Source: Phyllobates terribilis (lineage: Eukaryota). From it: DNA of 64,000 nucleotides. Below are positions 47,801 through 49,797 of this stretch, one piece after another (position 1 is the stretch's first letter; the number at the start of each line of letters is the position of its first letter). The translations under genes and the position numbers were made by a program. The DNA lies in NCBI RefSeq assembly GCF_046119375.1, contig NW_027362768.1, forward strand, positions 178,312,001 through 178,376,000. The letters run 5' to 3'. The notes under the pieces were generated by a model. The model made no database searches, was not told the DNA's origin, and was given only the letters and a program-made list of their open reading frames with translations.

Positions 47801-49797
47801 GGTTCAAATCCCACCAAGGACAACATCTGCAAGGAGTTTGTATGTTCTCCCCGTGTTTGCGTGGGCTTCCTTCCACACTCCAAAGACATACTGATAGGGA
47901 ATGTACAGTAGATTGAGAGCGCCGATGGGGACAGTGCCCATAATGTCTATGAAGCGCTGAGGAATTAATGGCTCTACATAAGTGAGTAAAATAAATACCA
48001 ATAGGTGAGGTGACCAAAGGAGCCCACAATCACTGTGTTTTCCTCTTTACAGCCTTTACCGTAGGGGGTTTATTAATTTTATATTTTGATGGATTACTTT
48101 TTTTTTTTTTTTTTTTTTTTCTAAACACTTTTTTACATTATTTTTGGTCTACTTCAGGAACTTGTACCTGCAATTATTTGATTGCTTATACGATATGCTG
48201 CAATACTTATTGAGAATAGCAAGATGGCAGCGACGAGAGCCTTCAGCAATAGTCACCCATCTCTGGGGGCTGACGTGTGTTAGCATCAGCATGCTTTTCA
48301 TTTTAATGCACCTGTGTCACTTTCATTAATATATTGATTTATACATATTTTTTAACCTTTTCAGGCTGCAATTCTTGTTATTAAGACTCATCCCTCACTG
48401 GTGCCGTAAGCCCATCCCTGACCCAGCCAACTGTGAGTGGGCCAAGGAGTACATCTCAAACCAGGTAAAGTGAAACATCTCCAGTGAAATAGCCACAAAA
48501 TGACTTCTATGGGAGAGCTTGTCCATCACCTACTGCTCATGGTGTGTTATCAACTTCTATCTTTATAATGGAGGATTCCCATTCATTGTACAATTTCAGA
48601 GCTGTAGTCATAGTTCTGCAGGCTGTTATGCTAGGACAGGTTGAAAGTTCAACTGTATATTTAAGAGCTGTACCTAAGCTAACATGATGAATTTCTTAAC
48701 AGGAGAAAAGCAGGATTCTTCCGAACGCTGCATCAAGTATCTCAGATAACGAAATAGAGACATTAGAAATAGAAGAGATGGACAGTGAGGAAGAGTCCGC
48801 GCCGGCTGTATTCAGTTATAAAATTGGCCTTACTACCCTCAGGGTCACTCAAGAGGAGAACAAAATACAGTCTGACCCCTCCTGCAGGGATATGTTAGCA
48901 GATTGGAGCATAAAATCTGCACAAGCTTTTTTCTACAAATCCATACAGCCTGAAAATCCGCCATCAGATTACCTTTTCCATCAAGATCTAAAACCATCCA
49001 ACTACCTGGTGCACCACGAGATGAGAACCTCAGACTACCTGGAGCACCACGAGATGAGAACCTCAGACTACCTGGTGCACCCCAAGATGAGAACCGCAGA
49101 CTACCTGGAGCAGCACGAGATGAGAACCGCAGACTACCTGGAGCAGCACGAGATGAGAACCGCAGACTACCTGGAGCAGCACGAGATGAGAACCGCAGAC
49201 TACCTGGAGCAGCACGAGATGAGAACCGCAGACTACCTGGAGCAGCACGAGATGAGAACCGCAGACTACCTGGAGCAGCACGAGATGAGAACCGCAGACT
49301 ACCTGGAGCAGCACGAGATGAGAACCGCAGACTACCTGGAGCAGCACGAGATGAGAACCGCAGACTACCTGGAGCAGCACGAGATGAGAACCGCAGACTA
49401 CCTGGAGCAGCACGAGATGAGAACCGCAGACTACCTGGAGCAGCACGAGATGAGAACCGCAGACTACCTGGTGCACCCAAAGATTAGAACCTCAGACTAC
49501 CTGGTGCACCCAAAGATTAGAACCTCAGACTACCTCGTGCACAGCGATATTGAAACATCCAGCTACTTGAGTCACCAGGATATTAGAGCATCAGAAAAGT
49601 TAGCCCATCGTGAAATTAAGCCATCGCCCTACCTGCTGCACAGCAAGGTGGACTATCTGCCAACTAATCTGTTCACCATCATGGAGGATCCCAGCAAAGA
49701 GAATAAAGATCAGTTCCATCACCTACTCCTGCTGCCAACTGGAGAAAAGACCAACAACACGATTAGCCTGGACAGTGTACTAATCAACTGCCCCTAG
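14673..49797 (+). CDS. il12rb2: Interleukin-12 receptor beta-2-like class I cytokine receptor; 11 coding exons in window, 5' exons upstream
   Basis: Exon phases join into one open frame. WSXWS is present, plus APLSGP...[25 protein letters not shown] and YLPTN, which match my recollection of human IL12RB2 (APLSGP...EQMGCLLHYRIY, PQWCSREIPDPAN, YLPSN). Not database-checked. Confidence 0.85.
14980..15232. repeat. 42-bp minisatellite, short left arm (about 6 units)
   Basis: Same unit as 21209-30130, separated from it by the L2 insertion. Confidence 0.92.
15350..16020. repeat. 81-bp tandem array (about 8 units) at the L2 5' end
   Basis: Period 81 (15431 to 15512). About 35 bp of the unit also occurs at the 5' end of L2 copy 2 (about 34930-34968, inverted). 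Confidence 0.9.
18815..20097. mobile_element. Solo LTR (Gypsy-like) inside L2 copy 1
   Basis: TG...CA ends and 4-bp TSD CTAA (18811-18814 / 20098-20101). The uninterrupted site is visible in L2 copy 2. Confidence 0.88.
21209..30130. repeat. 42-bp minisatellite, about 8.9 kb (about 210 units)
   Basis: Unit gtgccgccaccaccatacactgcagaaccattatactgtata, with higher-order block duplications. Confidence 0.97.
30607..34970 (-). mobile_element. L2-clade LINE, copy 2, near full length, inverted relative to copy 1
   Basis: Same APE/RT motifs in broken ORFs (31592-34643), same 5' UTR and 3' tail as copy 1, with additional frameshifts and stops. Confidence 0.93.
30808..31300. mobile_element. Unclassified AT-rich insertion in the L2 copy 2 3' UTR
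   Basis: Absent from copy 1. Flanked by 14-bp direct repeat ATATATTGTATAAT (30794-30807 / 31301-31314). Confidence 0.7.
35353..35500 (+). CDS. il12rb2: il12rb2 exon with WSXWS motif
   Basis: cag|GTGGAA...GACG|gt, phase 0 to 1. [49 protein letters not shown]. Confidence 0.93.
36132..36199 (+). CDS. il12rb2: il12rb2 exon
   Basis: tag|CTCCA...TGGAAG|gt, phase 1 to 0. [23 protein letters not shown]. Confidence 0.88.
36385..36701. mobile_element. T2/Kolobok-type MITE
   Basis: TTAA AGGG...CCCT TCAA ends with long imperfect TIRs (ttattcccaaaatagtaagttat / ataacttactatttgggaataa). Confidence 0.75.
36812..37107. mobile_element. T2/Kolobok-type MITE
   Basis: TTAA AGGGG...CCCCT TTAA ends, with an internal inverted pair ccggaagcgat / atcgcttccgg. 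Confidence 0.7.
37450..37663 (+). CDS. il12rb2: il12rb2 exon (FnIII)
   Basis: cag|TACATG...AAAC|gtaagt, phase 0 to 1. [18 protein letters not shown]...[25 protein letters not shown]. Confidence 0.92.
37902..38115. mobile_element. Palindromic MITE (PIF/Harbinger-like, TWA flanks)
   Basis: Near-perfect inverted arms of about 65 bp (ccactatcagtatttggtcag...aaaaccagg and its reverse complement), flanked by TAA / TTA. Confidence 0.7.
38768..38959 (+). CDS. il12rb2: il12rb2 exon (FnIII); missed by the ORF track
   Basis: aag|GTTTC...TCAG|gt, phase 1 to 1. [25 protein letters not shown]...VVTWKDP...[15 protein letters not shown]. Confidence 0.9.
39186..39287 (+). CDS. il12rb2: il12rb2 exon
   Basis: cag|GTTCC...ACAG|gtatga, phase 1 to 1. 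[34 protein letters not shown]. Confidence 0.9.
39376..39531 (+). CDS. il12rb2: il12rb2 exon (membrane-proximal FnIII)
   Basis: cag|CGCCC...AGCA|gtgagt, phase 1 to 1. [52 protein letters not shown]. Confidence 0.93.
39937..40098 (+). CDS. il12rb2: il12rb2 exon (end of ectodomain)
   Basis: cag|TACCT...ACAG|gtttcc (weak donor), phase 1 to 1. [39 protein letters not shown]... Confidence 0.82.
40230..42580. repeat. About 43-bp G-rich minisatellite, split by Tc1-a (arms 40230-40610 and 42244-42580)
   Basis: Unit approx gggggagccgggagaggggactgtcagctatcatctatgtgt. The right arm is more degenerate. Confidence 0.85.
40613..42241 (+). mobile_element. Tc1 transposon (Tc1-a), near intact, one frameshift
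   Basis: TA TSD, TIRs of about 200 bp starting CAGTACAGACCAAAAGTTTGGACAC. Transposase 41063-42078 with [15 protein letters not shown] and SPDLNLIE (DD34E-type motifs). Confidence 0.95.
42883..42961 (+). CDS. il12rb2: il12rb2 transmembrane exon (alternative in-frame acceptor at 42877)
   Basis: cag|AGGAC...CAGAG|gtaata, phase 1 to 2. [27 protein letters not shown]. Confidence 0.88.
43930..46191. mobile_element. Unclassified AT-rich insertion (about 650 bp without the nested Tc1-c) with 93-bp inverted arms
   Basis: 12-bp direct repeat CACAAATGTGCA at 43918-43929 and 46192-46203. Inverted arms at 43929-44021 and 44424-44516. Confidence 0.72.
44560..46168 (-). mobile_element. Tc1 transposon (Tc1-c), nested
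   Basis: TA TSD, TIR CAGTGGTGGCCAAA...GGCACCCCTGCAATTCTGTCAG. Broken transposase ORFs 45502-45852, 45025-45327 and 44779-44991 ([15 protein letters not shown]). Confidence 0.93.
46872..47155. repeat. Four tandem copies of a 71-bp unit at the 3' end of the Tc1-b transposase
   Basis: cctcatcaggagcatgcccagg recurs at 46872, 46943, 47014 and 47085. Confidence 0.9.
47760..47996 (+). mobile_element. tRNA-derived SINE (V-SINE-like), 5' end degenerate
   Basis: Pol III B box GGTTCAAATCC (47801), central domain gtttgtatgttctccccgtgtttgcgtggg, and a 3' tail resembling the L2 3' end. Confidence 0.75.
48365..48464 (+). CDS. il12rb2: il12rb2 Box1 exon
   Basis: cag|GCTG...CCAG|gtaaag, phase 2 to 0. [34 protein letters not shown]. 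Confidence 0.93.
48703..49797 (+). CDS. il12rb2: il12rb2 terminal exon (364 aa; Box2-like IETLEIEE, tyrosine repeat array, YLPTN)
   Basis: cag|GAGAAA acceptor, phase 0, in frame with ORF 48778-49797. Stop TAG at 49795-49797. Confidence 0.88.
   Translation, partial: EKSRILPNAASSISDNEIETLEIEEMDSEEESAPAVFSYKIGLTTLRVTQEENKIQSDPSCRDMLADWSIKSAQAFFYKSIQPENPPSDYLFHQDLKPSNYLVHHEMRTSDYLEHHEMRTSDYLVHPKMRTADYLEQHEMRTADYLEQHEMRTADYLEQHEMRTADYLEQHEMRTADYLEQHEMRTADYLEQHEMRTADYLEQHEMRTADYLEQHEMRTADYLEQHEMRTADYLEQHEMRTADYLEQHEMRTADYLVHPKIRTSDYLVHPKIRTSDYLVHSDIETSSYLSHQDIRASEKLAHREIKPSPYLLHSKVDYLPTNLFTIMEDPSKENKDQFHHLLLLPTGEKTNNTISLDSVLINCP
48967..49650 (+). repeat. 33-bp coding minisatellite (about 21 units; 11 identical [11 protein letters not shown] units at 49099-49461)
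   Basis: Period exactly 33 nt, frame preserved, homogeneous centre with degenerate flanks. Confidence 0.97.

Follow-up and report, generated by a model that had tools for sequence, protein, structure and literature searches.

An old, rapidly changing coding minisatellite in the cytoplasmic tail of frog IL-12Rβ2 is probably a tolerated product of mutation

The window analysed here, a stretch of 64,000 nucleotides from Phyllobates terribilis (assembly GCF_046119375.1, contig NW_027362768.1, positions 178,312,001 to 178,376,000 of the forward strand), begins inside il12rb2, the gene for interleukin-12 receptor subunit beta-2 (IL-12Rβ2), and the last coding exon of this gene carries a tandem array of short, mostly tyrosine-containing units. 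The protein is RefSeq XP_073499959.1, 1032 residues long, and its tail is identical to the translation of the window. Exact-match mapping placed residues 214-1032 at 100% identity on eleven plus-strand exons (Table 1). RefSeq already has both the gene and a protein model that includes the array. An exhaustive representative search with the translation of the last exon retrieved a 959-residue frog protein (P0001) with a matching tail, and the tail of that protein retrieved 13 frog proteins, most of them named interleukin-12 receptor subunit beta-2, which is also the NCBI name for the identical protein. Of the other high-ranking matches to the last exon, the two that were inspected (P0002 and P0004) were rejected as being similar only by way of their own unrelated tandem repeats. 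A phmmer search against PDB chains gave IL-12Rβ2 as the closest solved structure (8odz_D, E 2.6e-82, 280 bits), with weaker matches to gp130 (~1e-35), LIFR (1.7e-30) and IL-23R (~1e-12). The protein has the build expected of a tall type-I cytokine receptor, namely fibronectin III modules, a WSNWS motif, one transmembrane segment and the Box1 motif PIPDPANC. The fibronectin type III (fn3) matches in the Pfam scan were weak (E 2.3e-4 for the 38770-38961 exon) and the scan of the last exon returned only sub-threshold, repeat-driven matches (Mucin-like, Colipase-like), leaving Pfam uninformative for the tail. On these sequence matches the identification as il12rb2 is sound.

In the RefSeq model canonical splice sites connect the Box1 exon, in phase, with the last exon at 48703, and the cytoplasmic tail beyond the transmembrane exon amounts to ~397 residues (636-1032). 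The array lies within the sole long open frame of the region, 48703-49794, which is closed by a stop codon at 49795-49797. Tandem Repeats Finder detected a period of 33 bp at 49001-49535 (16.2 copies, 96% matches, no indels), and cutting the frame of the last exon stepwise from 48967 gave 21 in-frame units of 33 bp, or 11 residues, arranged head to tail; with a period that is a multiple of three and the frame kept throughout, this is a coding minisatellite. Units 5-15 are identical at the DNA level, with 0 differences over 363 bp, and each has a YLEQ core. Eleven perfect 33-bp copies by chance are impossible. On one side of this centre the cores of units 1-4 are, in order, DYLFHQ, NYLVHH, DYLEHH and DYLVHP, and on the other those of units 16-21 are DYLVHP (twice), DYLVHS, SYLSHQ, EKLAHR and PYLLHS, after which the end of the array passes into DYLPTN (49651-49668). 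In all the stretch has 21 tyrosines, with 19 in units 1-19, none in unit 20 and two in unit 21. DYLPTN itself reads as a C-terminal dock of the Y-L-P-x-N type. The copy number of 21 was read from a single assembly of P. terribilis, and all comparisons below likewise use one assembly per species; an exact protein look-up for a second assembly or haplotype of P. terribilis found one record only, and a cluster look-up for variants of its protein found none, retrieving the protein of Ranitomeya imitator.

The original prediction, made from the letters of the window, had described about 21 in-frame units of 11 residues with the central 11 identical, flanking degenerate units followed by DYLPTN, 21 tyrosines and a tail of about 400 residues, and it was accurate in all of these countable details. 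It had also named the gene as that for IL-12Rβ2, supposed the last exon to be joined to the Box1 exon, likened YLPTN to the human STAT4-docking YLPSN and taken the array for a coding minisatellite in which the YLEQ variant was recently amplified, and each of these points stands, the likeness of the dock at the sequence level.

The genomic loci of three further dendrobatids (R. imitator, R. variabilis and Dendrobates tinctorius) were cut into units. All four dendrobatid arrays are in frame, the sole indel being one of 3 bp in R. imitator. For the first unit and the last four, the closest DNA sequence is that of a unit in another species, which indicates that these edge units are orthologues. 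For most central units an identical or near-identical sequence is found within the same species, and some identical central units are common to both Ranitomeya species. A copy number that varies among related genomes, together with a homogenised centre and diverged, orthologous edges, is the pattern of a variable number tandem repeat (VNTR). Each species has amplified variants of its own: YLEQ in P. terribilis, in 11 copies, which no other sampled species has amplified; YLGH, YLVH and CLGH in R. variabilis; EYLGH and DCLVH/DCLGH in R. imitator, in a four-unit higher-order pattern; and YLGH…MGTS, YLGH…RRTS and YLED in D. tinctorius. In the R. imitator array (L001:21604-22590) the succession DCLG, DCLV, EYLG, EYLG is repeated several times. 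Single-base changes separate the YLEQ unit from the adjoining units, namely CAC to CAG (His to Gln) when set against unit 3, and TCA to GCA (Ser to Ala), the latter in common with unit 4. Since 0 of 363 bp differ among the eleven P. terribilis units, against a synonymous divergence (dS) of 0.18-0.30 between the flanking tail and those of the other dendrobatids, the YLEQ amplification would be far younger than the species splits, or else homogenisation would be ongoing.

A wider comparison of frogs puts the array in place long before P. terribilis. All 10 sampled non-hyloid frogs, which comprise basal frogs, a ranid and myobatrachids (Ascaphus, Bombina, Xenopus, Hymenochirus, Leptobrachium, Spea, Pelodytes, Lithobates, Mixophyes and Pseudophryne), have a single unit of the pattern DYLVNQxITV directly before the dock, for example SDYLVNQEITV-DYLPTD, and birds have a comparable doublet, SEYIANP…YLPS. 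Arrays of 6-30 units were found in 11/11 hyloid species sampled, with the 11-residue consensus D-Y-L-V-H-H-x-I/M-K-P-S. The unit counts, which in the older arrays depend on the chosen segmentation, are 6 in Anomaloglossus, ~9 in Engystomops, 10 in Eleutherodactylus, 11 in Hyla, 13 in both Bufo and Leptodactylus and 15 in Dendropsophus, and among the dendrobatids 15 in R. variabilis, 21 in P. terribilis, 27 in D. tinctorius and ~30 in R. imitator. The arrays add 60-300 residues to the tail while the flanking motifs stay conserved. Because the sampled non-hyloids have one unit and all sampled hyloids have arrays, the array is an old hyloid feature, going back at least to the common ancestor of the sampled hyloid frogs. 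It is not a recent insertion in P. terribilis but derives from the motif with tyrosine that lies just before the STAT4-type dock.

In every species the reading frame stays open from the acceptor at 48703 through the conserved C-terminus, and the downstream motifs DYLPxN, DQFHHxLLLP and NTISLDSV are likewise kept in every species compared. The flanking tail changes rapidly, its ratio of non-synonymous to synonymous divergence (dN/dS) being 0.5-1.0 before the array and 0.33-0.58 after it. For the pre-array tail (48703-48966) between P. terribilis and both Ranitomeya species the ratio is 0.99-1.02, with conservation confined to islands such as FYKS. Within the units the tyrosine is replaced by Cys (TGC for TAC) in 14 dendrobatoid units, that is, 11 amplified units of R. 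imitator and 3 of R. variabilis, and by Phe in two units of D. tinctorius. Since the 11 R. imitator units with Cys were themselves amplified, amplification does not depend on the tyrosine. The older, non-dendrobatid hyloid arrays have Tyr at position 2 in 28/46 units, Leu at position 3 in 35/46 and His at position 5 in 39/46, and a segmentation ignoring positions 2, 3 and 5 left these counts almost unchanged (Tyr 28-29, Leu 35-36, His 39); the dendrobatoid units have Leu at position 3 in 86/88 and His at position 5 in 68/88, all of these being counts from few species in which units within one array are non-independent observations. Gln at position 5, which creates the pattern YxxQ, is a recurrent minority state, seen in isolated YLAQ or YLVQ units of five further species (of Hyla, Eleutherodactylus, Leptodactylus, Engystomops and Anomaloglossus). 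Judged by these substitutions, the tyrosine of individual units is not visibly protected by selection.

Table 1. Features of il12rb2 in the window, with positions counted from its first letter and residues numbered as in XP_073499959.1.
Feature	Position	Strand	Basis
Coding exon, residues 214-260, cytokine-binding region	14672..14812	+	100% exact match to XP_073499959.1
Coding exon, residues 261-308, WSNWS motif	35356..35499	+	Exact match; WSNWS in translation
Coding exon, residues 309-331	36131..36199	+	Exact match
Coding exon, residues 332-403	37450..37665	+	Exact match
Coding exon, residues 404-467, fibronectin type III	38770..38961	+	Exact match; weak Pfam fn3, E 2.3e-4
Coding exon, residues 468-500	39188..39286	+	Exact match
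Coding exon, residues 501-552	39375..39530	+	Exact match
Coding exon, residues 554-606, fibronectin type III	39939..40097	+	Exact match; weak Pfam fn3
Transmembrane exon, residues 607-635	42876..42962	+	Exact match
Box1 exon, acceptor cag/G, donor CAG/gtaaag	48365..48464	+	Exact match; splice-site reading
Last coding exon, residues 669-1032 and stop codon	48703..49797	+	Identical to RefSeq protein tail
Array, 21 in-frame 33-bp (11-residue) units	48967..49659	+	Tandem Repeats Finder and frame cutting
Homogenised array centre, eleven DNA-identical units	49099..49461	+	Unit cutting, nearest-neighbour comparison
DYLPTN, counterpart of human STAT4-docking GYLPSN	49651..49668	+	Kept as DYLP[TAPSK][NDH] in most sampled frogs; human role from PMC7600943

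The array is probably best explained as a fast-evolving, in-frame coding minisatellite in a weakly constrained segment of the tail, whose turnover is driven by mutation and tolerated by the receptor. It would have arisen between the Box1/acidic membrane-proximal region and the conserved C-terminal dock DYLPTN by tandem duplication of the pre-existing DYLVNQxITV motif, no later than in the common ancestor of the sampled hyloids. Units would since have been gained, lost and homogenised, presumably through replication slippage or unequal exchange, and each dendrobatid species would as a result have come to carry its own amplified variant; in P. terribilis the unit with the CAC-to-CAG and TCA-to-GCA changes would recently have been amplified to 11 identical copies. 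The segment is presumably disordered and nearly neutral, and the receptor would tolerate it provided that the frame and the distal dock survive. That turnover of this kind is tolerated is suggested by the finding that the frame and the downstream motifs are visibly kept and the unit tyrosines are not. If signalling were affected, be it by extra phosphotyrosine docks or by a longer spacer ahead of the STAT4 dock, the effect would be a by-product. Three observations weigh against this explanation. The tyrosine and the match to Y-x-x-Q are retained in all 11 amplified units of P. terribilis, so that an effect on signalling is possible; the long persistence of the hyloid arrays in frame means that the segment as a whole could be useful; and the fair retention of Leu3 and His5 in the old units hints at some constraint.

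It had originally been proposed that the array may form a STAT3 platform and a rheostat. In that case the 11 YLEQ units, phosphorylated by the receptor-associated JAK, would present a multivalent STAT3 platform on a STAT4 receptor, with copy number as the polymorphic setting: the pYLEQ units of P. terribilis would recruit STAT3 or compete with STAT4, the copy number of an individual would re-weight STAT4 against STAT3, and the hyloid arrays would form a natural series of cytokine outputs tuned by the number of phosphotyrosines. All eleven units are exact Y-L-E-Q matches, with Gln at +3 from each Tyr. The STAT3 SH2 domain requires Gln at the third position after the phosphotyrosine (pY+3), and its best-binding peptide, pYLPQTV, has Leu at pY+1 (PMC3670284); YLEQ has both. 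The recurrence of single YL[AV]Q units in five other frog genera and the clear differences in copy number among related species would also suit such a platform. However, Pro at pY+2 contributes significantly to binding by the STAT3 SH2 domain (PMC3670284), and YLEQ has Glu at this position. The comparison of species also weighs against the proposal, as YxxQ is not conserved in the orthologues, His rather than Gln being usual at pY+3 and the best-kept residue of the unit, and as the sister species have amplified variants other than YxxQ (YLGH, CLVH, YLED), some of them with Cys and so tyrosine-less. The comparison with amphibian orthologues, such as the original prediction had called for, showed an array that is present and variable among hyloids, with the YLEQ amplification in P. 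terribilis only. Moreover, the tyrosines of mammalian IL-12Rβ2 already activate STAT3 as well as STAT4 (PMC7600943), therefore no new platform would be needed for STAT3 output. The STAT3 proposal thus fits the YxxQ pattern without support from comparison. In a repeat this young a formal match to YxxQ says little about function, and we consider the proposal of an adaptive platform, in its multivalent form and in the form of a competition tuned by copy number, to be unlikely.

Extra docks of the STAT4 or SOCS3 type would be at least as plausible as STAT3 docks because Leu at pY+1 serves STAT4, being required for its binding to human Y800 in GYLPSN, and because SOCS3 docks at Y800 (PMC7600943). 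The D-Y-L core of DYLPTN would here have been multiplied, and STAT4 recruitment or SOCS3 feedback raised or prolonged. The unit descends from a tyrosine motif that adjoins the STAT4 dock and is conserved from birds (SEYIANP...YLPS) to frogs (DYLVNQ..DYLPTN), Leu is present at position 3 in nearly all dendrobatoid units and in most other hyloid ones, and in the mouse the neighbouring tyrosines Y804 and Y811 both support phosphorylation of STAT4 and STAT3 (PMC7600943). That the frog unit is homologous to mouse Y804 is, however, only presumed, the Pro-x-Asn part of the STAT4 motif is missing from the units and tyrosine-less units were amplified as readily as others, and this too seems improbable. 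By eye and against consensus patterns, neither the immunoreceptor tyrosine-based inhibitory motif nor the Grb2 (YxN), PI3K (YxxM), STAT5 (YLxL) or STAT1 (YDKPH) motifs fitted the unit. The array might instead work without phosphotyrosine, as a His-rich disordered spacer whose length sets the reach from JAK2 at Box1 to the STAT4 dock, or through an L-x-H-H core that binds a partner or metal. The better retention of His5 and Leu3 than of Tyr in the old units, which is robust to the segmentation weights, and the lengthening of the tail between conserved flanking motifs agree with this, but the core matches no known motif (Pfam gave only spurious sub-threshold matches), His5 itself is lost in the amplified unit of P. 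terribilis, and the counts come from few species and non-independent units; we regard such a role as decidedly improbable. Finally, perfect repeats are prone to miscounting and P. terribilis is represented by a single assembly, such that the array or its copy number could be an assembly artefact, or the array could be removed from the mature mRNA. Three further dendrobatids and seven further hyloids, each from an independent assembly, nevertheless have in-frame arrays at the same place, the frame runs on from 48703 to the conserved C-terminus in every species and the array is part of the RefSeq model. The 363-bp perfect core is also short compared with typical long-read lengths. An artefact or loss by splicing is accordingly very improbable, and a tolerated, mutation-driven minisatellite remains the preferred explanation.

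The introns of il12rb2 in the window are unusually rich in minisatellites. The intron between the exons at 14812 and 35356 contains ~212 copies of a 42-bp satellite over 8.9 kb (21208-30129, 89% matches), and a short array of a 42-bp unit with similar translations lies at 14979-15235, just after the 14672-14812 exon. Further intronic arrays have periods of 81 bp (15350-16022), 43 bp (40251-40561), 52 bp (10412-11364) and 71 bp (46872-47161). Tandem Repeats Finder also reported repeats of 355-bp and 435-bp period at 12290-13689, unrelated to the il12rb2 array. A 32-bp array of ~62 copies (50566-52553, 77% matches) begins ~770 bp past the il12rb2 stop, in the 3' untranslated region or just downstream. 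Two long stop-free stretches in introns (41009-42075 and 46076-47040) were read by eye from their translations as putative remnants of Tc1/mariner-type transposases, and two in the large intron (17044-18816, 591 residues, and 19986-20924, 313 residues) may be open reading frames of a retroelement of the long interspersed nuclear element type.

How the number and arrangement of phosphotyrosine docks relate to STAT usage in cytokine-receptor tails is an active question, and competition between STATs for receptor tyrosines alters responses. The hyloid frogs offer a natural series within one receptor, from one unit in basal frogs to 15-30 in poison frogs, with Tyr present or absent and the residue at pY+3 being His, Gln or Asp. 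Should the units be phosphorylated, the series would be ready-made material for rules of multiplicity and motif specificity; if they are not, it shows how much change in length and sequence is tolerated before the STAT4 dock. In both cases the array calls for caution in annotation. Neither coding minisatellites in receptors nor cytokine-receptor tails with many tyrosines are new, both being well known. A literature search on repeats in the il12rb2 tail, il12rb2 in dendrobatids and coding minisatellites in receptor tails found no paper describing the array, and what appears to be new and undescribed is their combination in one hypervariable array, which is built from the tyrosine motif adjoining the STAT4 dock and ranges from 1 to ~30 units across frogs.

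Mammalian IL-12Rβ2 resembles the frog protein in its type of ectodomain, WSxWS motif, single transmembrane segment, Box1 (IPDPAN) and C-terminal D/G-Y-L-P-x-N following a second tyrosine motif; it differs in having 3 tail tyrosines in human and 11 in mouse with no tandem array reported (PMC7600943), whereas in P. terribilis multiplication of the pre-dock motif to 21 units lengthens the tail to ~397 residues. The YxxQ docks of gp130, LIFR, G-CSFR and IL-10R1 are similar in that several Y-x-x-Q motifs lie in a JAK-associated tail, with Leu at pY+1 as in YLPQ of gp130. Those docks are dispersed, individually conserved and experimentally validated, whereas the putative docks of the frog are 11 identical copies of recent origin that have Glu at pY+2, and the orthologous arrays are without Gln. 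The three immunoreceptor tyrosine-based activation motifs of CD3ζ and the EPIYA repeats of Helicobacter CagA, for which phosphorylation and an effect of copy number have been demonstrated, share with the frog array a short tyrosine unit in tandem, a potential multivalent SH2 platform, and a variable copy number; the frog array differs in that tyrosine-less units were amplified too. Coding VNTRs are familiar in immune and adhesion receptors, as in the decamer repeat of PSGL-1, the neck repeat of DC-SIGN and the repeat of GPIbα, all of them in extracellular stalks. The frog array is like these in its in-frame period, its shifts of copy number among close relatives, its homogenised centre and its degenerate edges, and unlike them it is situated in a signalling tail and repeats a tyrosine motif adjoining a STAT dock.

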